Of a stretch of DNA of 64,000 bases, positions 2,885 through 53,644 are shown piece by piece (positions within the stretch are counted from its first letter, which is position 1; each line of letters begins with the position of its first letter). The translations under genes and the position numbers were made by a program. A model generated the notes under the pieces. The model was not told the DNA's origin, made no database searches, and saw nothing but the letters and a program-made list of their open reading frames with translations. Location: the sequence record KJ019143.1, one strand, 5' to 3'.

Positions 2885-3844
2885 ATGGCAAAATCTAAGA
2901 AACAACTAAGATACCCACTTACTAGGATTGAGTCCAACTCTGACTATCTATCTATTAATGTGTGTAAATATAATCCACCAGGTTTTGCTGGGGGTAACAC
3001 TTCTGATACTATGTTCGATATCCCATCCAGCACTAGTATAGGTGGTGGTGGTAACTGCTCAAAGAAATCTATTGAGGGTAATATTTTATTGCCCATGCCT
3101 GATTCAATCGTAGACTCAAATATAACTAACTGGGAGAGTAATGAGATTAATAGTGTAGCTGCTTCTGCTATTGGCAGTATCAAACAGGGATTGGAGGAAT
3201 TTACACTAGATAGTATGATAAACAGCCCAGGCAAAAAACTCACAGATGGGTTAGCGCGCGCACAAACTACAGCAAGTAACGCTTTAGACGCCGCAAAGGA
3301 TCCAGCTGTTTCTGCTGCTTTGGAAAACTACTTTATTGGTAATGCTGTTAATCTATTTGGTGCAAACGTAGACGCAACATCACTCCTATCCAGAGAAAAG
3401 GGTTTAGTTCTTAACCCAAACATGGAGTTTCTATTCAAAGGTGTTCAACTTCGATCTTTCGACTTCACCTTTGTCATGAACCCCAGAAGTAGACAGGAGT
3501 CTATCGAGGTTAAATCTATCATCAATACTTTTAAGAAGAGAATGGCAGCTAAGAGTAGTGCTGAAGGATCAGGACCCAGGGGGTTATTTGTCAAAGCGCC
3601 TGATGTATTTGAACTCCAATTTAAGAGGGGTTCTTCCAAACATCCTTTCTTATATACTATGAAGACTTGCGCACTCACAAAGATGACTGTAGATTATATG
3701 AGAACTGGTAATTATATCACATATGAGGATAGTACCCCAGTTCAATTGGCACTGGCTTTGAGTTTCACTGAACTCAACCCAATATACGCAGAGGATTATG
3801 ATATGAATAACCTACCTGGTCCAAATGAAGGAGTTGGATTCTAA
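2885..3844 (+). CDS. gp48: Baseplate tail-tube cap
   Basis: NPNMEFLFKGVQLRSFDFTF, PDVFELQF, CALTKMTVDY, LSFTELNPI; ATAAATA at 2873-2879. Confidence 0.9.
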   Translation: MAKSKKQLRYPLTRIESNSDYLSINVCKYNPPGFAGGNTSDTMFDIPSSTSIGGGGNCSKKSIEGNILLPMPDSIVDSNITNWESNEINSVAASAIGSIKQGLEEFTLDSMINSPGKKLTDGLARAQTTASNALDAAKDPAVSAALENYFIGNAVNLFGANVDATSLLSREKGLVLNPNMEFLFKGVQLRSFDFTFVMNPRSRQESIEVKSIINTFKKRMAAKSSAEGSGPRGLFVKAPDVFELQFKRGSSKHPFLYTMKTCALTKMTVDYMRTGNYITYEDSTPVQLALALSFTELNPIYAEDYDMNNLPGPNEGVGF

Positions 3845-36297: not shown

Positions 36298-36374
36298 CAC
36301 CTGAATAACTGGCACAAGGGGGGTAGGCACCCCCCTTTTTTTGTGCTATACTACATTCATACCAAACCAATACT

Positions 36375-37945: not shown

Positions 37946-38120
37946 ATGAAAAGCAAGTATGTAGAGCTTATGTCCTTATGGAAAAGAGCTATGTCAATGA
38001 ACAACAAAGAGGAAGCATTCCGTCTAAAGAGTGAGGCTAACCAACTCATTATAGAAGGGAAGGTAACAGATAGGGAGATAACAGCAGGTAAGTTTATTGG
38101 TTGGCGTTGATTGATATAAA

Positions 38121-38262
38121 CTGATTTTCTCATATTCAGGGAGCACGGGGTGACCTGTTCTCCCTTTCTTTATGCCGATATGGATTTTTACGAGTTTGGG
38201 TCTAGTGCCTGACTGGGTTCTCAGGGGGCAACAAACCCCATATCACCCTGATACCACCCCCC
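38121..38262. repeat. Non-coding fixed-spacing element, copy A
   Basis: Blocks CTGATTTT, CCGATATGGATTTTT, GTCTAGTG, ACTGGGTTCTCAG shared with 47950-48071. Confidence 0.8.
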
Positions 38263-38388
38263 TACACAAAACCACAAACCATTGTGCCAGTTGGACTAGT
38301 GGCACAACCCCCCTAGGCAAACCCACAGCAGTCGTGTATTGTATAGAAGTGGAGGGGAGACCCACCACACAAACCATTCACCAAAACA

Positions 38389-38580
38389 ATGACTGAGATT
38401 TACACACAACCAACATTCTCAGTTCATTACTCAAGTGATGAACACGATCAAATCTTAACTGAAACTGATTCTCTCTTTGAAGCAACTTGTGAGTACTACG
38501 AGATGATCGAAGATTTAGAAGATGATGAATGGATTTCAATCTACAATGAAGATTACAAAATCCTCAAGATTTCAGAATGA
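38389..38580 (+). CDS. Acidic hypothetical protein
   Basis: Flanked by 25-nt direct repeats. Confidence 0.62.
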   Translation: MTEIYTQPTFSVHYSSDEHDQILTETDSLFEATCEYYEMIEDLEDDEWISIYNEDYKILKISE

Positions 38581-38615
38581 GGGGAGACCCACCACACAAA
38601 CCACTAACTAACCAA

Positions 38616-38798
38616 ATGAACCGTATCCAAATCAACAAAGAACTCACACAACTTCGCGAAGAACGTGAAAAAGCACAGCGTGAAGTTGATAACATTCAAG
38701 CATGTATGAATGAGTTGATGAAGAAGCGTAATGAGTTGGATATGGAACAAGAAGAGCGTTCAGGTCAGATGTTATTCGACCAGATGTTCGGAGGTTGA
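38616..38798 (+). CDS. Coiled-coil hypothetical protein
   Basis: ATG 38616 after A/C-rich leader. Confidence 0.62.
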   Translation: MNRIQINKELTQLREEREKAQREVDNIQACMNELMKKRNELDMEQEERSGQMLFDQMFGG

Positions 38799-38827
38799 GT
38801 TAGTAACACAAACTATTCACTAAAACA

Positions 38828-39073
38828 ATGAACACAACAACAATCAACATTCTCAAATCACTGGACATTCTTTCCACTTTGATTCAGGCATTCTATGAGA
38901 TTGGATATGAACTTGGCACCTTCTATCGCAACCATCTTCATTCACATGTGAAGTTTGCTATTGAATACTCTGGTCTTGTTATTCGTGAGACCTATGGTAA
39001 CCGTCAAGAGTATTTCACAAAACTGAATAACTTCCGCAACCAAGCTGGTTCATACTTTGTCTATAGCGTGTGA
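38828..39073 (+). CDS. Hypothetical protein
   Basis: Stop is the TGA of element 39069. Confidence 0.65.
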   Translation: MNTTTINILKSLDILSTLIQAFYEIGYELGTFYRNHLHSHVKFAIEYSGLVIRETYGNRQEYFTKLNNFRNQAGSYFVYSV

Positions 39074-39153
39074 CAGTTGAGGAAGTGGCACAACCCCCCT
39101 TGGCAAACCCCTCAGGGGGTGCTATACTATATTCATACCAAAGGGAACCACCC

Positions 39154-39396
39154 ATGACTCACCTTTCCTTCACTCAGACCACACAAAACGCACTCCGTGA
39201 GTTAGATCGTTTAGAGGGAATTAAAGTTAGACTCGCTGGTCTGATTGTTGATCTTAAAGAGACACCATCAGCTAACTCTGAGACTTGGGTCAGGATGTAT
39301 ACTGACCGCCTCGTTTCTAATGTTATCCCAGCCATCAAGGAAGTTAAAGAATATCTCACTAGTCAGGATGCACTAGTTACCAAAGCATCCAACTGA
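39154..39396 (+). CDS. Hypothetical protein
   Basis: ATG after element leader; the ORF-track start at 39070 reads through the promoter. Confidence 0.68.
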   Translation: MTHLSFTQTTQNALRELDRLEGIKVRLAGLIVDLKETPSANSETWVRMYTDRLVSNVIPAIKEVKEYLTSQDALVTKASN

Positions 39397-39473
39397 CAAA
39401 CTGGCACACAGGGGGTTGGCAAGACCCCCCAAAACCCCTATACTAAACACATACCAAACAAAGGGAACAACCC

Positions 39474-39725
39474 ATGGCTCAACAAATCAAAATGAGAACA
39501 CGAGTTTATTCTGATGTGACAGTACGAGATCCACAGAAATATTATGATAGTGTGTTTCAGGGTTATAATGAGTACTGGACACTATTAGATTCAGAAGATC
39601 CACAATGTATCTTAGTTGAGACTACAGCACAATATGATCTAAACCCAGAGGGTTTGGATAACTTATACGACTTGATTACTCCTGAAATGTATCAGTCAAC
39701 ATCAAGGACTTATGTGAAAGTATAA
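39474..39725 (+). CDS. Hypothetical protein
   Basis: Single-gene cassette. Confidence 0.68.
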   Translation: MAQQIKMRTRVYSDVTVRDPQKYYDSVFQGYNEYWTLLDSEDPQCILVETTAQYDLNPEGLDNLYDLITPEMYQSTSRTYVKV

Positions 39726-39807
39726 GGTGTGACAGTTGGAGAAGTGGCACACGCTTCCCCGCAAACCACCCCACACCTGCTATACTATATTCATACCAAA
39801 GGAACCA

Positions 39808-39975
39808 ATGTTTAAGTCACAAGTTCAGCGAATCGTCCGCGACACTGTTATTGGTCAGAGTGCTTCACTCACACGCGAAGAGAAGTGGTCCGTGTTCATC
39901 CAAGTCTGTGATGGTCTCTACAGTGACGGTCGCATCACACTCAAGCAACATGAAAGTTGGACATCCCCTTTCTGA
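39808..39975 (+). CDS. Hypothetical protein
   Basis: Single-gene cassette MFKSQVQRIV..KQHESWTSPF. Confidence 0.68.
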   Translation: MFKSQVQRIVRDTVIGQSASLTREEKWSVFIQVCDGLYSDGRITLKQHESWTSPF

Positions 39976-40068
39976 TCACCCTGATGTGACAGTTGGACTA
40001 GTGGCACAAACCCCCTAGGCAAACCCCTCCACACCTGCTATACTATATTCATACCAAAGGAACCCAAC

Positions 40069-40266
40069 ATGGTTATCGACACTGACAACTATTTCACCAC
40101 TGACAACGATCTTCTTCAGGCAGTATCACAATTCATTCTCTCACTGAATAACAAACTTATCAGTCAGAATGAGAACTTCCAGAGAGATACTGGTATCACT
40201 ACTCTTGATAGTTTCAATGAGTGTCTTATCGCTGAATGTGAAGAATACAAGTGTTATGATGTATAA
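40069..40266 (+). CDS. Hypothetical protein
   Basis: First gene of cassette. Confidence 0.65.
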   Translation: MVIDTDNYFTTDNDLLQAVSQFILSLNNKLISQNENFQRDTGITTLDSFNECLIAECEEYKCYDV

Positions 40267-40426
40267 TGAGATTACTTATTCTCTTCTTGTTTGTTACTGG
40301 GTTTCTAGTCCTTAGATTCGGAGTTGTCCCCCATGACAACTACGTATTCGATTGTGACAACATCCCACAAACAACAATCAACACCATCGCCTGTGGTGGT
40401 TAACACTCAACCTCAACTATTTCATC

Positions 40427-40936
40427 ATGACTGATACTAACAAGGCTCAAACAATTGAAGAGCTGAAAGCTGAAGTTTCTGAACTGAAGGCAGCTAGGAA
40501 GGAAGAACTTCTGGCACAGGCAGAACAACGAAAGCAAGATGAGGAACTTCGTTCACTCGAACTTCAGAAACAAGCTCTAGAAAGTGGTTCCCTCCCCTCC
40601 CCCACAGGCACACCCCAGTCACTACAACGTAGGATGACTGATGTTGAAAACGCACGAGTTCGCACCTGGGCATATGCACTAGGAGCTTATTTCACTGGTC
40701 CTATCATGCCAGCTGTGGTGGCTAATCGTACTAAGAATTGGACACCTTTCTGGGCTGGATTGGGTCTTGGTATTGTATCTCTCCCCCTAGCATTTGCTGA
40801 CCTTGGTATCATCTCCTCTGTTCCTGCAGCTGCTTTAGGAACTGTACTTCAGGCTCAGAAATCTAACAAGAAGCGTGAGGAGTTGGGTATTGTTTCCCCT
40901 GAGGAAGCTGACCTCCTCCGGTTCAAACAGTTCTGA
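40427..40936 (+). CDS. Hypothetical membrane protein with N-terminal coiled coil
   Basis: Coiled coil then 2-3 hydrophobic segments. Confidence 0.72.
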   Translation: MTDTNKAQTIEELKAEVSELKAARKEELLAQAEQRKQDEELRSLELQKQALESGSLPSPTGTPQSLQRRMTDVENARVRTWAYALGAYFTGPIMPAVVANRTKNWTPFWAGLGLGIVSLPLAFADLGIISSVPAAALGTVLQAQKSNKKREELGIVSPEEADLLRFKQF

Positions 40937-41033
40937 TTAAGTTACATCTCTGACCTCCTCAGTTTATACTGACGACTAAACCAACCGAGAGCGCTGGTCC
41001 CCTCTCACAACTCACCTTATCTAACTATCTACT

Positions 41034-41579
41034 ATGGCTATTTTCTCCGAAGAGTTCACCAACAGCATCAAGTCTAAAGTTGATTCAGCAAAGAACAAAA
41101 TCTCTAACATTAACATTGGGAAACAGAGTGTCGTTGCTATTGTGGGAGGTACTTTAGTATTCTCAACCCTCGCAGTTGGTGCAGTTGGTGCTACAGTTCG
41201 TCAGGTTGTTGGTTCTAACATTGGCAAAGAATGTAATGTGGCTGTTGGTGACTATGTGAGGTTGGCTGAAGTTCAAGAGACACAACTACTCAAGGCTAAT
41301 GGATATATTCAATCGGTTCTAGAAAACCCTTGGAGCGCCCTAGTCCTTGGTGCTAGGATGTCTGAGATGGCAGACGAGATGAGTGCTCGTTGGGATGAGA
41401 TTGGTGAAGCTGATGACACTTACCTTGAATCATGTGTTCTTGATGGTGACTTCAAGCGTTGGGTATTTGGTGGATATGTTCAAGAGGATCGTGAAGTGAA
41501 GTGGGAAGCTCAAGCTAACCTAGAGGAAACTCGTCAGGTTACAGTTAAACTCTCTGAGCAACTAGATAGCCGGTACTGA
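41034..41579 (+). CDS. Hypothetical membrane-anchored protein
   Basis: One TM; stop abuts element 41580. Confidence 0.72.
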   Translation: MAIFSEEFTNSIKSKVDSAKNKISNINIGKQSVVAIVGGTLVFSTLAVGAVGATVRQVVGSNIGKECNVAVGDYVRLAEVQETQLLKANGYIQSVLENPWSALVLGARMSEMADEMSARWDEIGEADDTYLESCVLDGDFKRWVFGGYVQEDREVKWEAQANLEETRQVTVKLSEQLDSRY

Positions 41580-41663
41580 TGTGACAGTTGAATAAGTGGC
41601 ACAAGGGGGGTTCGCAACCCTCCTTTTTTATGCTATACTATATTCATACCAAAGGAACCACAC

Positions 41664-41915
41664 ATGCCCAACCCTTTCGAGTCACTGACCCCTGAGGAGT
41701 TTTCGTTTCTATCTGACGCCTGTGCCCTCTCTGAGCAGATGTGGAGGGAGCGCTCCCGTTCTATAAAAGCAGGAGAGTCGCGTTGGTTTCTAGATGGTGA
41801 GCCCATGTTCACTGAAGAGGAATGTCGCTCAGAGATGAAACGATACCGTGAGTTACAGAAGCGAGTTTCCTGGTTCTCCCTCACACCAGAAGAGATGGAG
41901 CGTGTGACAGTCTAG
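41664..41915 (+). CDS. Hypothetical protein
   Basis: Single-gene cassette ending ERVTV* in element. Confidence 0.68.
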   Translation: MPNPFESLTPEEFSFLSDACALSEQMWRERSRSIKAGESRWFLDGEPMFTEEECRSEMKRYRELQKRVSWFSLTPEEMERVTV

Positions 41916-41984
41916 AAACTGGCACAAGCCCCCTAGGCAAACCCCTCCTTTTCTGCTATACTATTCACATACAGACAAAACACT

Positions 41985-42890
41985 ATGGCTAAGAATCTCC
42001 ACCTAGAACACCCAGAAGACCAGCTCCTCACTGGTGATGATAGTGTCATCAGTTGGTTCTATGCAACCTCTAGTTCCTCTGTGAAGATGGATGGTAGTCC
42101 TGCAATAGTTTGGGGAACTAACCCAGAAAATGGTGAGTTCTTTGTGGGAACTAAGTCAGTCTTCAATAAGAAGAAGATCAAGATATGTTATACCCAGAAA
42201 GATATTACAACCTTATATGGTCATCAACCTAATGTGGTTGCTATCCTTACCGCCTGTTTGGCATACCTCCCCCGCACTGATGTAGTGTATCAGGGTGACT
42301 TTATTGGGTTTGGTGGTGATGATACCTACACCCCAAATACTGTCACCTATGTGTTCCCTGAGGTTATTCAGGAACGTGTTATCATGGCACCCCATACTTT
42401 CTATGTGGGTGAGAAGATGACTGAGATGGATGCCTTCCCTATCTTATCCACTCTAGATGAATCACGTCATGTTCACTTTGTTCAACCCACTGTAGATATC
42501 TACAACGATAAGGCAAACTGGGAAGAGTTTCAGCGTTGTTATGATGAAGTGAAAGAGGTAGATGGTTTCCTAGGTATCAAGAGAGCCGCAGAGGCAAAGA
42601 TCATCATCAACCAGTTACTTCGTAACAACAAGTATCTCAGTATCCCACTATTGACTGAGATCTTTGGTACTAAAGAGATGGCTATTCTGTACACCTTCGC
42701 ACTACATGAGAAGTTCAGAATCCTTGAGGATGCTATCTACTACGATGGTCCTCAGTGTTTGTTAGATGGTGATGATGTAGAGTCTGAGGGTATTGTTAGA
42801 ACCAATCAGTTTGGTTCTATGAAACTCGTCAATCGTTACATCTTCAGTGTAGCAAACTTCAACAACAGCAAGTTCAGAGAGGTGAAGTAA
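41985..42890 (+). CDS. Protein with ATP-dependent ligase/nucleotidyltransferase-like motifs
   Basis: KMDG (I), QGDF (III-like), EGIV (IV), MKLV (V). Confidence 0.65.
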   Translation: MAKNLHLEHPEDQLLTGDDSVISWFYATSSSSVKMDGSPAIVWGTNPENGEFFVGTKSVFNKKKIKICYTQKDITTLYGHQPNVVAILTACLAYLPRTDVVYQGDFIGFGGDDTYTPNTVTYVFPEVIQERVIMAPHTFYVGEKMTEMDAFPILSTLDESRHVHFVQPTVDIYNDKANWEEFQRCYDEVKEVDGFLGIKRAAEAKIIINQLLRNNKYLSIPLLTEIFGTKEMAILYTFALHEKFRILEDAIYYDGPQCLLDGDDVESEGIVRTNQFGSMKLVNRYIFSVANFNNSKFREVK

Positions 42891-43084
42891 TGATTGACTT
42901 CGATACTCTAACCCACGAAGAACTAGAGAGACTATCTGATGACTGTGAAGACTTTCTTCTTCATAGAAATATACCTCTAAGGTCACATTCCTATGAGAAT
43001 ATCATCAGACATGCTATCTTGGAAGGATACCAACTCTCTCGGTATCCTGGTGTGACACCTCAGAAACTGGCACAAGACCCCTAG
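42890..43084 (+). CDS. Hypothetical protein
   Basis: Reads through element 43051. Confidence 0.6.
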   Translation: MIDFDTLTHEELERLSDDCEDFLLHRNIPLRSHSYENIIRHAILEGYQLSRYPGVTPQKLAQDP

Positions 43085-43134
43085 ACAGGGACCCCAAACC
43101 CTGATATACTACATTCATACCAAACAAACAACCC

Positions 43135-43392
43135 ATGCAACTCACAGCACAACACGCAAACATCGTTGTTGATTTCTACCCTGTAAAGTATTCTGATGGT
43201 ACTATCAGTGAGCGTCTAATGTATAAAACAGTGAAGTTCGTTGGTTCACCCCCATCCAAGTCATATATCAACAAAGAATCCTTCGAAAAGGAAGTTGATT
43301 CCCGTGTTTATGGTTTTGGTTATGAGGTGACTGCTCTACATACAGAGCCACAACTCTTCAACTCTGCACTTGTTCAAACTCGCTGGTCATAA
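43135..43392 (+). CDS. Hypothetical protein
   Basis: First gene of cassette. Confidence 0.7.
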   Translation: MQLTAQHANIVVDFYPVKYSDGTISERLMYKTVKFVGSPPSKSYINKESFEKEVDSRVYGFGYEVTALHTEPQLFNSALVQTRWS

Positions 43393-43394
43393 GT

Positions 43395-43586
43395 ATGAAT
43401 TACACACAACGGTTGTATGAAGCTGAACAACTCTCCACTATGTGTTACCTCCAGGATATTGATCTAATGGATTGTATCATGGAGGTACGTGATTATCTAG
43501 AGTTGGGTTATAATGAAAGTAAAGATATTGCCTCAGGTACATATAAAGTTCTCTCATCAATGAATCCCAATGAGCCTATCAAATGA
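43395..43586 (+). CDS. Hypothetical protein
   Basis: Operon ORF. Confidence 0.58.
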   Translation: MNYTQRLYEAEQLSTMCYLQDIDLMDCIMEVRDYLELGYNESKDIASGTYKVLSSMNPNEPIK

Positions 43587-43941
43587 ATCAATGAAGAAAC
43601 TTGTGGAAAACGTTGGACCTGATGTTTTCCATCTAATTGCTTCTGACCCATACTATACTGAGACCTTTATGAACCTATTACCTGGTGCAATCACTGAGGT
43701 TATTGGTGACACTTCCCCTGAACTTATTGGTGCTTTGGGTATCAGTATCATGAACAGAATTGAGTTTGTTGGTGACGATGATGGTGGTGATAATAAAGCC
43801 GCTAAAGTATGGGAGGAGAGATATAGATCTCTGTTTCGTTATGTCAAAAACACATACGCATCAGAGTATGTTGATGGGGCAGAATATGGTCAGATGGGTA
43901 CAATGTATGGAGATTTTACTAGTACCTCGGAGTTAGACTGA
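43570..43941 (+). CDS. Hypothetical protein
   Basis: Operon ORF, 123 aa. Confidence 0.65.
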   Translation: MSLSNESMKKLVENVGPDVFHLIASDPYYTETFMNLLPGAITEVIGDTSPELIGALGISIMNRIEFVGDDDGGDNKAAKVWEERYRSLFRYVKNTYASEYVDGAEYGQMGTMYGDFTSTSELD

Positions 43942-44144
43942 TGCCATCATTTACACCCTATGGTAGATACCAACTAACATCAGTTCAGGTAGATTTGATC
44001 CTACACTGCATGAGTGAGTATAAAGGACTCACCACACAGGAAGATAACGAGAGGAGAAAGATTGTAGAAGAACTTAGCAACTCTTTTGCTGATACTGACC
44101 CATCAGATCCTTACCTAGATCATTACTATACTTGTGACTATTGA
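43941..44144 (+). CDS. Hypothetical protein
   Basis: Coupled TGATG start. Confidence 0.62.
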   Translation: MPSFTPYGRYQLTSVQVDLILHCMSEYKGLTTQEDNERRKIVEELSNSFADTDPSDPYLDHYYTCDY

Positions 44145-44518
44145 TGAATGAACTCTTTCCTTTTCCTGGTTTCCAGTATAGGCTAGACTATACAGATAAC
44201 GGAACTCCAAAGCTATGTTGGTTTGAATGTGAGGATCATTTAGCCAAACATATATCTAGATACAAACTAACAAAGAAAACTCACAGGGCAAAGATCCAAA
44301 CCCCTCGCGGTGTGAAGTTGGCGAAAGACCCGCTATCCACCAAACCAGCCAGGAAACGGAAAACCACCCCCCAGAAACCCAGTGATACCAAGGGTTCTAA
44401 AGTATCAAAAACACAAAAATCCATAACGAAGGGCAAGAAGGTAGAAACACCCACCCCCTCCCGTAGGAAAGCGAAGAAATCAGTTTTTAGTACCGTGGAG
44501 GACTTCTTTACCAAATGA
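44141..44518 (+). CDS. Hypothetical protein with Lys-rich C-terminus
   Basis: FPFPGFQYRLDY..CWFECEDHLAKHISRYKL. Confidence 0.68.
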   Translation: MMNELFPFPGFQYRLDYTDNGTPKLCWFECEDHLAKHISRYKLTKKTHRAKIQTPRGVKLAKDPLSTKPARKRKTTPQKPSDTKGSKVSKTQKSITKGKKVETPTPSRRKAKKSVFSTVEDFFTK

Positions 44519-44706
44519 TTGTACCTAACGAATCAGAATTGCTTCACCTAAAGATACAAGCAGCAATGAGGGAGAATGCTTTTCCTCACAATCAGTTGAT
44601 GTATCTGGGTGAGAGAGAAGATCAACACTGGTATCTAATAGCAGGAAAACATGAAGTGCCAGTAACAATGTTAGAAGGATTTGAGAGGATTGATGATGAA
44701 GAATGA
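44515..44706 (+). CDS. Hypothetical protein
   Basis: Coupled ORF; HWYLIAGKHEVP. Confidence 0.65.
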   Translation: MIVPNESELLHLKIQAAMRENAFPHNQLMYLGEREDQHWYLIAGKHEVPVTMLEGFERIDDEE

Positions 44707-44844
44707 TAAACTAAAGACATATCACCTAAAGGTAAAGTTTATGGATGAACTAACCTATGGTCAGTTTATTACAGCACCCAGTGAAGAGGAAGCCATGAGA
44801 CTTTTCATTGAGGAGTATATCTACATCGCATCGGAGAGAGACAC

Positions 44845-45036
44845 ATGAACCACAATAAGGTAGCAGAGGCTCTTCATGAAGAAGTAACTGATTATATCTT
44901 TAAGAACCATTATCGCCATATCAAATCAGTTTATACTGATGTTGTTGAGGAATACATAGAGAGGGAAGTGGGTCCTCTAACTGAGAAGAACCACAAACAA
45001 CTAGTTAAACAACTCGTTAAATTCTACATCTCCTGA
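44845..45036 (+). CDS. Hypothetical protein
   Basis: Operon ORF. Confidence 0.6.
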   Translation: MNHNKVAEALHEEVTDYIFKNHYRHIKSVYTDVVEEYIEREVGPLTEKNHKQLVKQLVKFYIS

Positions 45037-45050
45037 TTGAGCTTTTCGTT

Positions 45051-45260
45051 ATGTCTTCACCATCAGCATTCACACCAGCATTAGGTCTAGAAGTTGAATA
45101 CAGGGGATTTGTGGGTTATATCAAGTTTATAGATGAAGAATATTTAACAGTGTGTGTGAAGAAGAAAGAGCACCAAATGTTTGGTGATGTTTGTATGGTT
45201 GTGTATCCAAGTCAGTGGGAACACATTAAACTAATGGGCGGACCTCACAGAGACCGATAG
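45051..45260 (+). CDS. Hypothetical protein (SH3-like beta pattern)
   Basis: GLEVEYRGFVGYIKFIDEEYLTVCV; stop overlaps element 45258. Confidence 0.65.
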   Translation: MSSPSAFTPALGLEVEYRGFVGYIKFIDEEYLTVCVKKKEHQMFGDVCMVVYPSQWEHIKLMGGPHRDR

Positions 45261-45344
45261 GACAGCTGAGGAAGTGGCACAAGGGGGCTAGGCAAGCCCC
45301 CTTTGTCGTGCTATACTATATTCATACCAAAGGGAACCACCCCC

Positions 45345-45491
45345 ATGACTATCAACCTTAAAAGTCTATTCATCACCACTTGTGTGGGTCTCACCCTAAT
45401 ACTAGGGAGCTTCGCTTTTACCAGTGATTATGGTACTGAGACCGGGCGTGGCGAACAGACTGAGAGCCCTTACTACGGACCCGCTTTCTAA
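45345..45491 (+). CDS. Small membrane protein
   Basis: Single-gene cassette, one TM. Confidence 0.6.
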   Translation: MTINLKSLFITTCVGLTLILGSFAFTSDYGTETGRGEQTESPYYGPAF

Positions 45492-45559
45492 AGTGTCACA
45501 AGGGGGGTTGGCAATACCCTCTACACCTGCTATACTAAACACATACCAAACAAAGAACC

Positions 45560-45736
45560 ATGTTCAAACTTCAACTCAAGTGGCAGAAAGAAGGTGAGTG
45601 GATTGATACAGTATACGCTCCTACAGAATACGCAACAGCTTTCTTTCGTTGGAGACAGTACCAAGAGCTTTGGGGTGATACTCACACCTATCGCCTCCTC
45701 GATGTGACACCTCAGGAAGTGGCACAAGCCTCCTAG
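45560..45736 (+). CDS. Small hypothetical protein (58 aa, not in ORF track)
   Basis: Single-gene cassette MFKLQLKWQKEGEW..., reads into element 45703. Confidence 0.6.
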   Translation: MFKLQLKWQKEGEWIDTVYAPTEYATAFFRWRQYQELWGDTHTYRLLDVTPQEVAQAS

Positions 45737-45785
45737 GCAAACCACCCCACACCTGCTATACTAAACACATACCAAACAAAGAACC

Positions 45786-46067
45786 ATGAATTTCAAGTCC
45801 TTCCTCCTTTCCTCACTCATCGTCACCACCGGGCTAGTAGCCTCAGCACCAGGAGCCAAAGCCGCTGAATGTTTCATGGGTGATGGCTATCGGGTTTGTA
45901 TGGAGAGCTTAGGCATGAATCGTTGGGAAGTATCCTTCGAGAACAACCATGGCTCAGAGTTTATGGAGGTTCAGTGTATTGGCAAGAGTGTGAGTGATTG
46001 GACATCACGAGGTGATTTGAGTCAGTCTGAGGCAAACTATCTCGCAGAACAGTTCTGTTCCTGGTAA
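45786..46067 (+). CDS. Exported 4-Cys protein (paralog of 49473-49790)
   Basis: Signal peptide ending AKA; C..GYRVC..G.E..VQC..W.SRG..A..AEQFC. Confidence 0.75.
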   Translation: MNFKSFLLSSLIVTTGLVASAPGAKAAECFMGDGYRVCMESLGMNRWEVSFENNHGSEFMEVQCIGKSVSDWTSRGDLSQSEANYLAEQFCSW

Positions 46068-46100
46068 GATATAACAACTAACCAACTCTACACTATTATC

Positions 46101-46259
46101 ATGTTTGTATCCTTCACTGAAATCCAAGACTACATTCGCGAAGATCAATACACATATAGTGAGCGCCAGTTCCGCTCACGCAAGTATAAAAAGAACGAAC
46201 GTCGTTATCAGCGTCGTCAGAAGCAACAACAAAGAGAACGCAACTACGATAGCGTGTGA
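46101..46259 (+). CDS. Small Arg/Gln-rich protein (52 aa, not in ORF track)
   Basis: MFVSFTEIQDYIRED..RRYQRRQKQQQRERNYDSV*, stop in element 46255. Confidence 0.58.
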   Translation: MFVSFTEIQDYIREDQYTYSERQFRSRKYKKNERRYQRRQKQQQRERNYDSV

Positions 46260-46338
46260 CAGTTGGAGAAGTGGCACACACTTCTCCGCAAACCCCTCAG
46301 GGGGTGCTATACTATATTCATACCAAAGGGAACCACCC

Positions 46339-46563
46339 ATGACCACCACCACTCCAAACCTCTACAACGAAGCTATCCGTCGTTTGGCTGACGGGTTCTC
46401 CTCAGAGTTCGCTGAGTTCTGTGCAGGAGACGAGAGGGTTCACGAGATCATGATGGACCTCGCTAGTGAGTTCGTAGAAACCAATATCCCTGTAGTGAGT
46501 GAGGATAGCCAGCACGACGTGGCTTCTGAGCTCCTCATGAGTATCACAGTCACCAAGGTGTGA
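46339..46563 (+). CDS. Hypothetical protein
   Basis: Single-gene cassette; stop is TGA of element 46559. Confidence 0.7.
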   Translation: MTTTTPNLYNEAIRRLADGFSSEFAEFCAGDERVHEIMMDLASEFVETNIPVVSEDSQHDVASELLMSITVTKV

Positions 46564-46643
46564 CAGTCTAGGAACTGGCACAAGGGGGGTTGGCAACACC
46601 CCCCAAAACCTCTATACTAAACACATACCAAACAACCCAGACC

Positions 46644-47192
46644 ATGAACTTCAAGAAACTCCTCCTTTCCACCCTCGCACTTGGTTCAGTTGTAGCCCCT
46701 TCAGCAAACGCTGGTTATACCTATGAGGGTTACCACTTGATGGATGGTTCTGACTTTCCTGGTTATGAGAGAGTGGCAACCCCAATGATTCAGGCTCTCA
46801 ATGAAATGGGTGTTCCTGTTGTTGATGGTGGTAAGAATAACGTAGAAATGTGTATTCCTGAAGAGGAAAAGATGACTCTTGGTTTCTACGTTCCAGCATC
46901 CAATGTGATGGTTATCTGTACCAAGTCTATCCCAGGTTGGCTTCAGATGGAGACACTTACCCACGAAACAGTTCACGTTATCCAAGACGCAAGAGCTGGT
47001 ATTGATAACGGAGATTTGGGAGAGGCACCAACCGATCACCTTATCACCCTCGCTAATGAGATGGATCCCGATAAGATGAATATCATCTACAGCCTCTACG
47101 ATGAGTCTGATTACGCAGTAGAGATTGAAGCTTTCTACTTTGAAACAGAACCCCAGGTGGTTATGAATGAGATCCAACGTTGGGCATTCTGA
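46644..47192 (+). CDS. Exported zincin-like metallopeptidase
   Basis: Signal peptide MNFKKLLLSTLAL..PSANA; HETVHVIQD HExxH; downstream EIEAF. Confidence 0.75.
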   Translation: MNFKKLLLSTLALGSVVAPSANAGYTYEGYHLMDGSDFPGYERVATPMIQALNEMGVPVVDGGKNNVEMCIPEEEKMTLGFYVPASNVMVICTKSIPGWLQMETLTHETVHVIQDARAGIDNGDLGEAPTDHLITLANEMDPDKMNIIYSLYDESDYAVEIEAFYFETEPQVVMNEIQRWAF

Positions 47193-47234
47193 TACACTAA
47201 GTAACACTCACCAAACACACTAACTAACAACATC

Positions 47235-47621
47235 ATGGGCACACGTTCACGCATCGGTTATCAACTTCCAACTGGCAATATCGTTTCTGTGTATCATCAT
47301 TGGGATTCCTATCCTACGTGGTTGGGTAAGAGACTCACCAAAAACTATATCACTGATAAAACTATCACCGAACTGATTGATGGTGGTGATATGTCATCTA
47401 TCGAGAGTAATCGCGACTGGGATCTTAATGAAGTTGCCCCACATGTTCAGTATTATTCACAACGTGGTGACACTGGATGTGAACCCCTCCTTCACAAAAA
47501 CCAAAGAGAGTTTATCAAAACCACTGTAGATTGTTGGGGTGAGTATTCCTACTTATACAGGAATGGACGTTGGTTCTGTTATGATGAGAAGGGTAAGTCT
47601 GTTTCACTGAAGAACTTATGA
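47235..47621 (+). CDS. Phage hypothetical protein
   Basis: MGTRSRIG..SVYHHWDSYPTWLG..GGDMSSI..EYSYLY..W. Confidence 0.75.
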   Translation: MGTRSRIGYQLPTGNIVSVYHHWDSYPTWLGKRLTKNYITDKTITELIDGGDMSSIESNRDWDLNEVAPHVQYYSQRGDTGCEPLLHKNQREFIKTTVDCWGEYSYLYRNGRWFCYDEKGKSVSLKNL

Positions 47622-47953
47622 TTAGCAAACTGTTTTCACTATCTCTTGTTCTTGCGGGTTCTATCTTACCCGCACAGTCATACCCCAATATCGTATATTG
47701 GGAACGCATTGATTGTAACCTCATCACCGAAACTATCCAGAAGTGTGATAGGTACAATGGGCAGAATGGAGTTTTCATCGAATCATACTACCTGGACATA
47801 TACACAAACGAACATAGCTTTATAGATCCACGAGGACCTGAAATAGTTGTACCTGATGTAATAGAAGAAGAGACACTAGATGATATCCAACCTGATGTAG
47901 AATACAACGAACCGATAACAACAACAGACCCACTCCTGAATGATAGTTACTGA
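47618..47953 (+). CDS. Hypothetical exported protein
   Basis: Signal peptide, acidic tail. Confidence 0.6.
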   Translation: MISKLFSLSLVLAGSILPAQSYPNIVYWERIDCNLITETIQKCDRYNGQNGVFIESYYLDIYTNEHSFIDPRGPEIVVPDVIEEETLDDIQPDVEYNEPITTTDPLLNDSY

Positions 47954-48071
47954 TTTTTCCATATTCCTGTCGGCAACCACCTCCTACCATACCCCCTGCC
48001 AAACCGATATGGATTTTTCACCTTTTCCGTCTAGTGACTCACTGGGTTCTCAGTGGGACCAAAATGAGAAT
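47950..48071. repeat. Non-coding fixed-spacing element, copy B
   Basis: Same four blocks and offsets as 38121-38262. Confidence 0.8.
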
Positions 48072-48191
48072 CCACCCCCATACCCCCAGACAGAGCAAAA
48101 CTCATAACCATGTGACAGTTGGATTAGTGGCACACGAAAGCCCGCAAACCCCTCAGGGGGTGCTATACTAAACCCATACACAACAAAACCA

Positions 48192-50688: not shown

Positions 50689-50775
50689 TGTGACAGTTGG
50701 AGAAGTGGCACAAGCCCCCTAGGCAAACCCCTCCATACCTGCTATACTAAACACATACCAAACAAAGGAAACCAC

Positions 50776-51199: not shown

Positions 51200-52453
51200 A
51201 TGACCCTCACTCTCCGCCCCCACCAACTAGAAGCACTTCAGGTGATGGCTGAGACTCGTCTTGGTCAGATATTAGTTCCTACTGGTGGTGGTAAGACATT
51301 GATTGCCATCATGGACGTTGTGAGGACTCTAGAGAACGCAGGAACCCCTCAGACCATCGTTGTGGTGGCACCTAGGATATTGTTAGCCCAGCAACTCTGT
51401 AGTGAGTATATGGAGGTTCTGAGCGATAGGTTCGCCAACGTTATCCCCGCCCATATTCACTCAGGTCATACACCTCACTTTTCTACCACTAATATTCAGA
51501 AGATCCATCTTTTCGAGAAGATGATGGATACCGCCAACCTCCACCGCATATATTTCACCACATACAACTCACTTCCACGTTTAGCAGAAGCAGGTGTAAG
51601 TGTCGATACTATTATGTTCGACGAAGCTCATAACTCCACTCGTAATGACTTCTATCCCGCTACCAAGTATTTCTCACAGACCGCTAGTCGTTGTTACTAC
51701 TTTACAGCAACTCCCCGTCACTCAGTAACATCCAAGAGACACGGAATGAACGAGTCTGATGTATACGGACAGGTTATCTACAATGTTCCTGCCCCTACAC
51801 TTGTACAGGGTGGGTTTATCATCCCTCCTCAGGTTCGTGTTAAAGAGATGGAGTTCGTAGCTAAACATGAGCTCATCTCACAACGTGACACAAACCACCT
51901 CATCTCTTGTATTGATGACAACAACACGAGCAAAGTTCTAGTTTGTGCTAAGTCAGTCAAACAGATCATGCGTATGTTTAGTGAGACCGATATCAGCCAA
52001 CAACTTGATGATCGTGGTTTCTCCTATATGTACATCTCAGCTAAGACTGGTGGTGTTATCAATGGTAAGAAAGTATCACGTACTATGTTCTTCGATACTC
52101 TAAACGAGTGGGGTAAGGATAACAACAAGAAGTTCATTGTTCTTCATCATTCTATTCTCTCTGAGGGTATCAATGTAAGTGGTCTAGAGTCCGCTATCTT
52201 CTTACGTACTATGGACCACATTACTATCTCCCAAACGATTGGACGTGTCATTCGATTACATAAGGATGATGCTAAAGCTATGAGAGATGGTTCGATTCGC
52301 CCCGGTGATCTTAACTCCTATACTAAGTCCTTTGGTTTGTGTATTGTTCCAGTTTATTCTAAAACACAACAAACAGTTGCTAAGTCTCTTCAGGCAGTTG
52401 TTAATACCGTCTTTGTGGAAGGTGAAGCAGCAACCACAGTTGTGAGGCGTTAG
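51200..52453 (+). CDS. Superfamily 2 helicase (DExH, type III restriction Res-like)
   Basis: VPTGGGKT Walker A, FDEAH, FTATP, ILSEGINV, QTIGRVIR. Confidence 0.92.
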   Translation: MTLTLRPHQLEALQVMAETRLGQILVPTGGGKTLIAIMDVVRTLENAGTPQTIVVVAPRILLAQQLCSEYMEVLSDRFANVIPAHIHSGHTPHFSTTNIQKIHLFEKMMDTANLHRIYFTTYNSLPRLAEAGVSVDTIMFDEAHNSTRNDFYPATKYFSQTASRCYYFTATPRHSVTSKRHGMNESDVYGQVIYNVPAPTLVQGGFIIPPQVRVKEMEFVAKHELISQRDTNHLISCIDDNNTSKVLVCAKSVKQIMRMFSETDISQQLDDRGFSYMYISAKTGGVINGKKVSRTMFFDTLNEWGKDNNKKFIVLHHSILSEGINVSGLESAIFLRTMDHITISQTIGRVIRLHKDDAKAMRDGSIRPGDLNSYTKSFGLCIVPVYSKTQQTVAKSLQAVVNTVFVEGEAATTVVRR

Positions 52454-52561: not shown

Positions 52562-53272
52562 CTATTGTTTTGTTTCTGAATAATACCATAAGTATCCTTT
52601 CCAACGCGAACCCCATTTGATAGAAGTACAAATACCCTTCCCACGATCCTCCTCATTAAAGGATCTCATCGCATCACTAATAGAGTCAAACACGGGAGTA
52701 ACATGACCAGTCTTATGAACTCCATAGACTTGTTTCTTATTCTTAGCGTGTTTATGAATCCACCATTTATAACCATATGCCGAACCCTCTCTTGTGATAC
52801 TTCTCCTGATATTTGATGGCCTACCATTCACAAACTCAGCGGCAGCAACCCAACCATGAAAGGTCTTAATCTTACCCGTTTCCAAGCACCTACACTTGAT
52901 GACGTTCTTATCATGTTTCTTAGGTTTCTTCTTTCGTTGATAACCCCATCTCCTATCCCCGTTATGATATGACTCTTTATTATTCAGCTTCCTAGTCTTA
53001 TGTTCTAACACCAAATTGTTATACTCAGGGTTATACTTATTCATCCAATATTCCACTCGTTCAGTAAGCTTATTCTCATTCACTTCTTCTAGTATACGTA
53101 TAGTAAAGTCATCGGAGTTATAGTAAGATAAGGCATTCGACAGAGGAGTATTTTCCTCCTTATGATTTTCCAATATCCCAGCCCAAACTTTATTCAGGGG
53201 AAGCGTATCATAACCGATGTATTTGTGAGAGGTTTGTCTATTCAAGATGATGTAGATGTTTGTGATGCTCAC
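52562..53272 (-). CDS. GIY-YIG homing endonuclease-like protein with NUMOD-type DNA-binding repeats
   Basis: NIY-x10-YIG, FTIRILEE, YNPEYN; FHGWVAAAEFV..AYGYKW and FDSISDAMR..WKGYLW. Confidence 0.8.
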   Translation of the reverse strand: MSITNIYIILNRQTSHKYIGYDTLPLNKVWAGILENHKEENTPLSNALSYYNSDDFTIRILEEVNENKLTERVEYWMNKYNPEYNNLVLEHKTRKLNNKESYHNGDRRWGYQRKKKPKKHDKNVIKCRCLETGKIKTFHGWVAAAEFVNGRPSNIRRSITREGSAYGYKWWIHKHAKNKKQVYGVHKTGHVTPVFDSISDAMRSFNEEDRGKGICTSIKWGSRWKGYLWYYSETKQ

Positions 53273-53351: not shown

Positions 53352-53644
53352 TGTTATAATAGAAAGGAAGAGATCAACGTATATAACCAATGGAATTACC
53401 TAGGTAAGGATGAATAGAATAACCAATAGATTAACCTAGTAAGAAGTGATCTAATAGAAGGTAATCATATAGAGGAAGGTGAATAGAAAGCCCTATAGAA
53501 AGACCCAATAGAATGTAATCTAATCCATTGTAATCACCTATAGGATAGTATCATATAACGAGGTCTTTACAGCTCACTAAGCTCCTCCTAAACTCCACTG
53601 CCCGTTGCATATAAAGATCCATAGAAAGGTCTCTGCCCGTTGCA
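53352..53644. repeat. Non-coding tract with ~9 ATAGA(A) repeats and a 12-bp direct repeat
   Basis: ATAGA near 53359, 53414, 53426, 53454, 53469, 53483, 53495, 53508, 53621; CTGCCCGTTGCA at 53598-53609 and 53633-53644. Confidence 0.75.

Follow-up and report, generated by a model that had tools for sequence, protein, structure and literature searches.

The 64,000-nucleotide stretch analyzed here (the window) comprises bases 1-64000 of Synechococcus phage ACG-2014f isolate Syn7803C12 (KJ019143.1; genome 224.5 kb), a T4-like cyanomyovirus (Kyanoviridae, Atlauavirus). It carries two copies of what is, judging from sequence comparison, a conserved, phage-specific and so far undescribed non-coding element family of T4-like cyanophages, about 125 nt in length. 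We put at roughly 0.45 the probability that this element is an RNA-level, cis-acting transcript-boundary module on the mRNA-sense strand, which would act in termination or processing. Both copies lie in the hyperplastic stretch between 30 and 51 kb, which holds ~70 small genes without known function, all on the plus strand, and they occupy the two longest intergenic gaps of this small-open reading frame (ORF) stretch, 38111-38388 (278 nt) and 47954-48191 (238 nt). The copies and the helicase gene to which the family is linked are as follows.

38120..38245, plus strand: element copy 1, between genes 58 and 59; full-length match to covariance model R1 (87 bits, E 8.5e-21)
47949..48074, plus strand: element copy 2, between genes 88 and 89; full-length match to R1 (91 bits, E 6e-22)
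51200..52453, plus strand: SF2 helicase gene (phrog_16; ResIII/DEAD/Helicase_C), which closes the hyperplastic stretch; its ortholog precedes the element in most relatives

Model R1, built from relatives, was run over the whole 64-kb window and gave no comparable match beyond copies 1 and 2. A preliminary description of this DNA had placed four blocks at identical offsets in the two copies, and these positions and spacings were confirmed: block 1 (CTGATTTT..CATATTC) starts at 38121 and 47950, block 2 (CCGATATGGATTTTT) at 38175 and 48004 (+54 from block 1), block 3 (GTCTAGTG) at 38200 and 48029 (+25 from block 2) and block 4 (ACTGGGTTCTCAG) at 38212 and 48041 (+12 from block 3). Within the window, the 15-mer and the 13-mer of the blocks are each present in exactly two places. 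Between the blocks the copies do differ, as had been described, with a column identity of 75% over the whole gap, and in copy 2 the stop codon of gene 88 (47951-47953) falls within block 1. The parts of the two copies to which we refer below are the following.

38121..38137, plus strand: block 1 of copy 1 (CTGATTTTCTCATATTC), with the first T tract and CATAT, the 5' arm of helix P1 (38131-38135)
38138..38165, plus strand: variable inner hairpin of copy 1, AGGGAG (38138-38143) with CTCCCT (38160-38165), then a T-rich tail; present in the minimum free energy structure
38175..38189, plus strand: block 2 of copy 1 (CCGATATGGATTTTT), with ATATG as the 3' arm of P1 (38178-38182) and a GATTTTT tract directly after it
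38198..38220, plus strand: hairpin P4 of copy 1, GGGTCTAGT, loop GCCTG and ACTGGGTTC; nine pairs, four of them G-T; holds blocks 3 and 4
47958..48013, plus strand: helix P1 of copy 2, TCCATAT (47958-47964) with ATATGGA (48007-48013), enclosing the weak stem GGCA/TGCC and followed by TTTTT
48030..48046, plus strand: hairpin P4 of copy 2, TCTAGT, loop GACTC and ACTGGG
48044..48073, plus strand: lineage-specific helix of copy 2, GGGTTCTCA with TGAGAATCC, overlapping the 3' arm of P4

Copy 1 is present in 45 of 45 ACG-2014f genomes and copy 2 in 44, and ACG-2014d, a member of another genus (Lowelvirus), carries, 676 nt downstream of the helicase gene, a homolog in which the blocks follow in the same order and at the same spacing. 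Further relatives were recovered by pattern scans: scans of metagenomes added three lineages, a search of IMG/VR anchored on blocks 3 and 4 revealed a much wider family, and a later search anchored on the other hairpin arm contributed additional members, bringing the total to more than 60 distinct homologous sequences, including uncultured cyanomyovirus contigs. The preliminary description had reserved the case that no homologs exist elsewhere and that the spacing is not conserved; this does not hold, because ACG-2014d and more than 60 uncultured sequences keep both order and spacing. When canonical members were compared by BLASTN with 50,697 phage genomes, matches were obtained solely in ACG-2014f and ACG-2014d, and cellular genomes yielded no element, their sole match being a chance one in a Prochlorococcus single-amplified genome. 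Rfam 15 gave no match at gathering thresholds for the whole window and the loci of 14 relatives. The element resembles the Rfam motifs of cyanophages and cyanobacteria (PhotoRC-I/II, manA, wcaG, glnA/Downstream-peptide, Yfr and IMES RNAs) in being a conserved non-coding motif in marine cyanophages, but no Rfam family matches the copies or canonical members even at E values up to 10, other than at chance level (E 1-10). We found no account of the element in the literature on the motif, on ACG-2014f, or on cyanophage origins or non-coding RNAs. A looser DNA pattern, ATGGATTTTT..CTGGGTTC, was also run on viral contigs and discarded; past the known members it returned only chance matches in coding DNA.

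The neighborhood of the helicase gene was mapped by tblastn with the window's helicase as query. In at least 30 loci, 13-51 nt separate the stop codon of the orthologous helicase gene from the end of the element, which is usually convergent with that gene; in other loci it lies 216-676 nt downstream of the helicase, or there is a second copy kilobases away (loci L066, L067 and L118). In these three uncultured cyanomyovirus contigs, the copies are found at 3575 and 4039, at 2450 and 9051, and at 3428 and 10029, respectively, one behind the helicase and one elsewhere. Relative to flanking genes the element is found in either orientation. The ACG-2014f copies, which point in the same direction as the genes, have moved away from the helicase-adjacent place and now lie 4.4 and 14.2 kb upstream of the helicase, and in the isolates S-SCSM1, S-CAM9 and S-RIM2, which lack the element, the helicase gene is followed without a gap. 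The helicase itself is a core cyanomyovirus gene, found in 419 phage records, in some of which it is annotated as UvsW; compared with the PDB by sequence, it gave only weak matches to the helicase domain of MDA5 and no identification as T4 UvsW. Repeats of the REP and MITE kind are similar to the element in being intergenic and hairpin-bearing and in occurring in both orientations and in several copies per genome, but the element differs from them in its very low copy number, its lack of terminal inverted repeats, target duplications or a transposase, and its orthologous place across genera.

The element had been described as twice repeated, and this is true of its two strong copies; the count is not strictly two, however, as the window also contains a degenerate copy within gene 76.

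44391..44484, minus strand: probable degenerate inverted third copy (R1 E 0.22), inside the 3' two thirds of gene 76 (44144-44518)

This copy contains TCGTTATGGATTTTT, identical to the ACG-2014d form of block 2, together with a block-1-like CTGATTTC 55 nt upstream of it, a spacing like that between blocks 1 and 2 in copies 1 and 2, and a hairpin GAACCC..GGGTTTC. Gene 76 (phrog_3790) matches the short family phrog_1609 only in N-terminal residues 2-47, and the remainder of its ORF may be read-through across an inverted, decaying element.

That the element is non-coding is indicated by the fact that no frame is kept open: among 58 relatives, the numbers of stop-free sequences in the three frames are 20, 2 and 15 on the element strand and 4, 0 and 2 on the other strand. 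The earlier statement that no ORF explains the element thus stands in its conclusion, although ORFs at 38172-38396 and 48034-48171 do overlap the copies. A coding reading of the reverse strand (EPS...) was likewise dropped because of stops, a frameshift and the lack of an open frame. In all pairs compared, the element diverges more slowly than the third codon positions of the helicase gene, and in the main subgroup more slowly than the whole helicase gene as well. Between ACG-2014f and ACG-2014d, the element is 0.65 identical as against 0.36 for helicase third codon positions; between L059 and L072, it is 0.89 identical, as against 0.73 for helicase nucleotides and 0.54 for third codon positions. 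Such slow divergence indicates purifying selection, horizontal spread of a cassette, or both. The homologs with the same spacing and the slower change than at synonymous sites of the helicase together support the earlier proposal of a functional (or horizontally maintained) element at the junctions of the cassette array.

The preliminary description had overlooked the best-conserved hairpin of the element, in which GTCTAGTG pairs with ACTGGGTTC. In the family alignments, blocks 3 and 4 form the two arms of this hairpin, P4, which has the form YYAGT, a 5-nt loop and ACTGGG(TTC). P4 is the only helix kept family-wide by RNAalifold and, in an all-against-all column scan, the sole stack of at least four pairs that is at least 85% canonical; 91-94% of the alignment cells are paired, and one double change from A-U to C-G is compensatory (GAACCC/GGGTTC to GACCCC/GGGGTC). 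On this comparative evidence P4 really pairs, but the transcribed strand is not readable from it. An alternation of C and T opposite an invariant G in the 5' arm, which we had considered as proof of the transcribed strand, was abandoned, since the search pattern had a fixed 3' arm and fixing the 5' arm gave mirror changes from G to A. Several lineages show both orientations of the P4 loop (GGTGG/CCACC, GCTGG/CCAGC, GGTAG/CTACC and CCCTG/CAGGG).

Upstream of P4 lie an irregular long hairpin and two runs of A or T. In ACG-2014f the long hairpin consists of P1 (CCATAT/ATATGG) around a variable inner stem, and block 2 (ATGGATTTTT) is the lineage-specific form of the second run. Parts of the fold proposed earlier hold up. 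For 24 relatives the CATAT/ATATG helix is paired in 78% of the cells, and ACG-2014d has one compensatory change in it; the inner hairpin is predicted to form in copy 1, but it is weak in copy 2 and is exchanged for unrelated hairpins in sister strains. Among ACG-2014f strains, several unrelated alleles are found for the stretch that joins block 1 to block 2, each of them still hairpin-capable. The third helix of that fold (TCAGGG/CCCTGA or TTCTCA/TGAGAA) cannot be maintained, with only 56% of cells paired and breaks without compensation in sister strains. In the lineage-specific helix of copy 2, one pair alternates between T-A, A-T and G-T among strains, and this helix also forms in ACG-2014d. 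Helices other than P4 as a group were paired in 56-78% of cells and showed modest covariation, with a score of 0.251 compared with 0.10-0.17 for slid controls; in the narrow set, 61 of 500 shuffles reached the observed score. In the subgroup with A runs, RNAalifold returned nested helices Ha, Hb and Hc on the element strand, which together with P4 are paired in 74% of cells as against 30-52% in slid controls. In two of three subgroups, the consensus fold had the more favorable energy on the element strand (-25.7 vs -17.5 and -28.2 vs -13.0), but single-sequence z-scores were alike on both strands (L092, -3.0 vs -2.6; L059, -1.3 vs -1.9), and the choice of strand by folding energies was given up because it is not robust to a control for composition.

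Each of the two runs upstream of P4 reads GATTTT(T) or, as the exact complement of this, AAAA(A)ATC. T runs are found in elements oriented with the flanking genes and A runs in those oriented against them; GATTTT occurs 43 times on the mRNA-sense strand compared with 15 times on the other, and nearly all of these 15 come from the D family. This bias implies that the polarity of the tracts follows transcription even though the rest of the element inverts. In the helicase-adjacent group, the order on the gene strand is a hairpin, U6-7, the long hairpin and U6, and the first of these hairpins was flagged as terminator-like by a scan; in ACG-2014f the order is U tract, long hairpin, U tract and P4. 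In L092, a helicase-adjacent relative, the site flagged by the scan is TGGGTT-CAA-AACCCG followed by ATTTTTT, which is made of the P4 arm and the second tract. Read by eye, several ACG-2014f inner-stem alleles are textbook terminators of a stem and T6, such as GGGATGG/CCGTCCC followed by T6, and others have a T-rich tail; GGATGG/CCATCC is a further inner stem of a sister strain.

Both copies are placed directly upstream of what appear to be early promoters. The palindrome that had been counted as the next part of the element does begin +71 and +70 after block 4, as described, but it is rather the upstream box of a promoter cassette, which has 10 pattern matches in the window and occurs in ~25 intergenic gaps.

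38283..38347, plus strand: PeSL-like early promoter cassette after copy 1; box TGTGCCAGTTGGACTAGTGGCACA, TAGGCA (38314-38319), 17 nt, TATTGT (38337-38342)
48112..48169, plus strand: PeSL-like early promoter cassette after copy 2; box TGTGACAGTTGGATTAGTGGCACA, CCGCAA, 16 nt, TGCTATACT

The hexamers of the cassette after copy 1 were read by eye, and sigma-70-type matches were found by scan for sister cassettes. The ~25 gaps with a cassette are spread over 30110-51199, between small ORFs (e.g., 36298-36374, 39976-40068, 41580-41663 and 50689-50775). The order within a cassette is a box TGTGACAGTTGGAGAAGTGGCACA, a -35-like TTGGCA or TAGGCA, TGCTATACT and a conserved leader ATATTCATACCAAAGGAACC; the -35-like hexamer frequently lies within a G/C hairpin loop, the hairpin having a T tail. 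In a consensus scan many cassettes are sigma-70-type promoters and some are terminator-like hairpins. PeSLs of T4-like phages are composite terminator/promoter cassettes that are also points of recombination (Arbiol et al. 2010, PMC2839356; Comeau et al. 2014, PMC4122927), and neither of these papers describes cyanophage cassettes of this type. The element shares with PeSLs the character of a short, sequence-conserved, repeated module at gene junctions of the hyperplastic region, and both copies adjoin a cassette, but it is a separate unit of ~125 nt, and its window copies have no sigma-70-type promoter of their own, none having been found by scan inside 38120-38245 or 47949-48074. The stem-loop over the -35 that characterizes a PeSL is seen in genuine form in the window at 36298-36374 and 41580-41663, and is formed by none of P1, the inner stem and P4. 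The element further differs in number, with two or three per genome as against ~25 cassettes, and in its preference, in either orientation, for the place behind the helicase. In L092 (3718-3746; also in L063, L071 and L093), an ORF-like MGLDIPTQRC plus stop after the element is in fact a perfect promoter, with TTGACA in a GGGGC..TCCCC loop, 17 nt and TAAACT, and hence in relatives, too, a PeSL-type promoter adjoins the element.

These features suggest how a transcript-boundary module might work. The irregular long hairpin (P1 with the variable inner stem) and the short conserved P4 would each stand beside a GAUUUU(U) tract, and hairpins and tracts together would terminate or cleave the early transcript arriving from upstream shortly before the following PeSL-like early promoter is reached. 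Intrinsic termination, RNase E-type cleavage at GA↓UUUU or a combination of the two could achieve this, and the hairpins would then shield the new 3' ends. The tracts and hairpins can be interpreted as termination or processing signals, and the element is indeed placed ahead of a PeSL-like promoter, in the window and in relatives, or behind the helicase stop codon. In enterobacteria RNase E follows the rule RN↓WUU, with which GA↓UUUU agrees. The element thus resembles intrinsic terminators and RNase E-type sites in that hairpins precede U tracts on the mRNA strand and the whole lies downstream of a stop codon and ahead of the following promoter; it differs from them in being far longer and far more conserved in primary sequence, and the stems before the tracts are weak in copy 2. 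The preliminary description had offered a phased multi-protein DNA site or a structured non-coding RNA; the functional element that both presuppose is partly supported, and the polarity of GATTTT favors action at the RNA level without settling the choice between them.

Several observations weigh against a boundary module. A length of ~125 nt with 10-13-mers invariant across genera exceeds what terminators or cleavage sites normally need. Copy 2 has only a weak, AT-rich P1 stem ahead of its T tract, the terminator scan found no site within either window copy, and single-sequence folding of both copies is unremarkable (z ~ -1). The polarity rule is broken in three lineages (the D family, the L060 type and the second run of the L061 type). 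Counting both strands, the window has just four GATTTTT heptamers (38183, 47952 and 48012 on the plus strand and 44415 on the minus strand), always within the three copies, but this exclusivity is weak evidence, because T5 runs are rare throughout the genome (40 on the plus strand). Instead of purifying selection, a mobile cassette that spreads horizontally may lie behind the high similarity of the element in distant phages. Finally, the long invariant stretches (ACTGGGTTCTCAG and those of the GGATGACC and GCAGTAGAAT types) imply that the element likely has a sequence-specific partner, which the boundary model does not name.

Two alternatives deserve serious attention. We consider it unlikely that the element is an independently transcribed small RNA from the element strand (the one with ACUGGGUUCU), in which a rod-like 5' domain and P4 would act in trans; the same estimate covers the variant for the ancestral position, an antisense RNA converging on the 3' end of the helicase mRNA. 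Such an RNA would suit an element that is oriented irrespective of its flanking genes, most often convergently with the helicase; the better consensus fold on the element strand in two of three subgroups and the pairing of Ha, Hb, Hc and P4 beyond slid controls, with AU/GC/GU alternation at several pairs, also speak for it. However, composition-corrected z-scores are similar on both strands, a G+U-rich element strand favors folding by itself, the asymmetry of C or U opposite G in P4 is an artifact of the search pattern that is mirrored when the other arm is fixed, and Ha-Hc are absent or unalignable in the ACG-2014f type. Partly by eye, a -35/-10-like ATGACC, 16 nt and TAGAAT and a TAYACT box can be read on the element strand, but the TAYACT box coincides with the upstream box of a divergent PeSL promoter. 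We rejected ATGACC-16-TAGAAT as an internal promoter, as its spacing fails in the ACG-2014f and ACG-2014d types, and a late promoter TATAAAT upstream of block 1, which is perfect in some lineages only and absent at copy 2. The flip of GATTTT polarity relative to P4 is also hard to square with one fixed RNA. A site acting at the DNA level, either a promoter- or hairpin-type origin by the helicase gene or an array to which a phage or host protein would bind, strikes us as rather improbable too. It would account for the preferred place beside the helicase gene, for the either-way orientation and the multiple copies in L066, L067, L118 and the window, for the P4 loop in both orientations, as expected for palindrome extrusion or recognition of double strands only, and for three direct CAGTRG-type repeats and a spacer-less palindrome, TCTCAGTGAGA, which is impossible as an RNA hairpin; homing endonuclease genes beside the conserved core in several lineages point in the same direction. 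The T4 origin oriF lies beside uvsW/uvsY, and at oriF (uvsY) and oriG a promoter is combined with an unwinding element, the R-loop primer being removed by UvsW. The likeness to these origins is one of position only, namely that of non-coding DNA beside a UvsW-like SF2 helicase gene in a T4-like phage, whereas the element has no AT-rich unwinding element, MotA-type promoter or sequence similarity. Its GC content of 0.47-0.48 against 0.42-0.45 in the surroundings offers no obvious unwinding element, a GC/AT skew scan shows no origin signal, and the repeats of the element are both short and inexact. MotA-type middle promoters, on which T4 origins depend, are not known from cyanophages, and a tract polarity that follows the direction of transcription is not required of a pure DNA site.

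The remaining explanations fare far worse. That the element is a short protein gene or leader peptide, with ATG GAT TTT of block 2 read as MDF..., seems exceedingly improbable; synonymous variation at codon 4 (TCA/TCG/TCC) in several lineages and a GAGGG six nt upstream in one lineage, both seen by eye, speak for it, but stops interrupt the MDF frame at codon 11 (copy 1) and codon 4 (L038), a 1-nt indel shifts it in ACG-2014d while the downstream nucleotides are conserved, and the ATG is missing in most of the wider family, in which no frame is stop-free. A functionless, decaying segmental duplication, the null of the preliminary description, is very improbable as well. The differing fill of copies 1 and 2 and the clearly degenerate third copy would be expected from decay; the same architecture in another genus and in many uncultured phages, the retention of the copies in 44-45 ACG-2014f genomes and a conservation above that of helicase third codon positions would not.

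Beyond the boundary module, a bolder proposal, which we think quite doubtful, is that the element represents a new class of regulatory nucleic acid in cyanomyoviruses, one that has a sequence-specific partner, and is either a processed small RNA excised between the two GA↓UUUU sites or the long-sought replication origin of T4-like cyanophages beside the UvsW-like helicase gene, with the invariant ACTGGGTTCTCAG hairpin as recognition site. T4-like cyanophages are among the most abundant viruses of the ocean, and their non-coding regulatory repertoire is almost unmapped; the element is associated with a core replication gene as well as with the junctions in the region of gene shuffling. Were it to end or process early transcripts, it would set the transcription units of the hyperplastic region, and as a boundary module it would be the terminator or processing partner of the PeSL promoter cassettes thought to drive gene shuffling. 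As an origin or a small RNA, it would give direct experimental access to cyanophage replication or host takeover. Whichever reading holds, the covariance model provides a new annotation feature for T4-like cyanophage genomes.

Some further observations concern the surroundings of the element. Genes of the homing-endonuclease type cluster around the element system in several lineages. In the window, a gene for a 'cox1-i7 protein' (52562-53272, minus strand) lies on the opposite strand just behind the helicase gene; in strain US40 (L054, KJ019100.1 38189-38656), an HNH gene takes the place of gene 58 directly upstream of copy 1; and in one metagenomic lineage (L036 4835-6076, minus strand), a GIY-YIG-like gene (phrog_314) stops 0-4 nt from the conserved core. 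Some ACG-2014f strains (L008, KJ019150.1 37031-39748) have a DNA methyltransferase gene and a second, 484-aa helicase gene, both of which are absent from Syn7803C12; we set aside a link between this insertion and the element, since the block ends ~1.8 kb upstream of copy 1 and is not adjacent to it. A scan of the window for tRNA and tmRNA detected nothing. TATAAAT, the core of T4-type late promoters, occurs on the plus strand at 2094, 9330 and 25071, ~30-40 nt 5' of the starts of late structural genes at 2130, 9362 and 25110, and T4-like late promoters therefore appear to be used by ACG-2014f. The 535-nt gap that separates the cox1-i7-like gene from gene 100 holds, ~1 kb away from the helicase gene, six plus-strand WATAGAA heptamers packed into 156 bp (53358-53513; 40 in the window on both strands) together with several imperfect direct repeats of 19-25 nt; this iteron-like cluster is a candidate binding array or origin.

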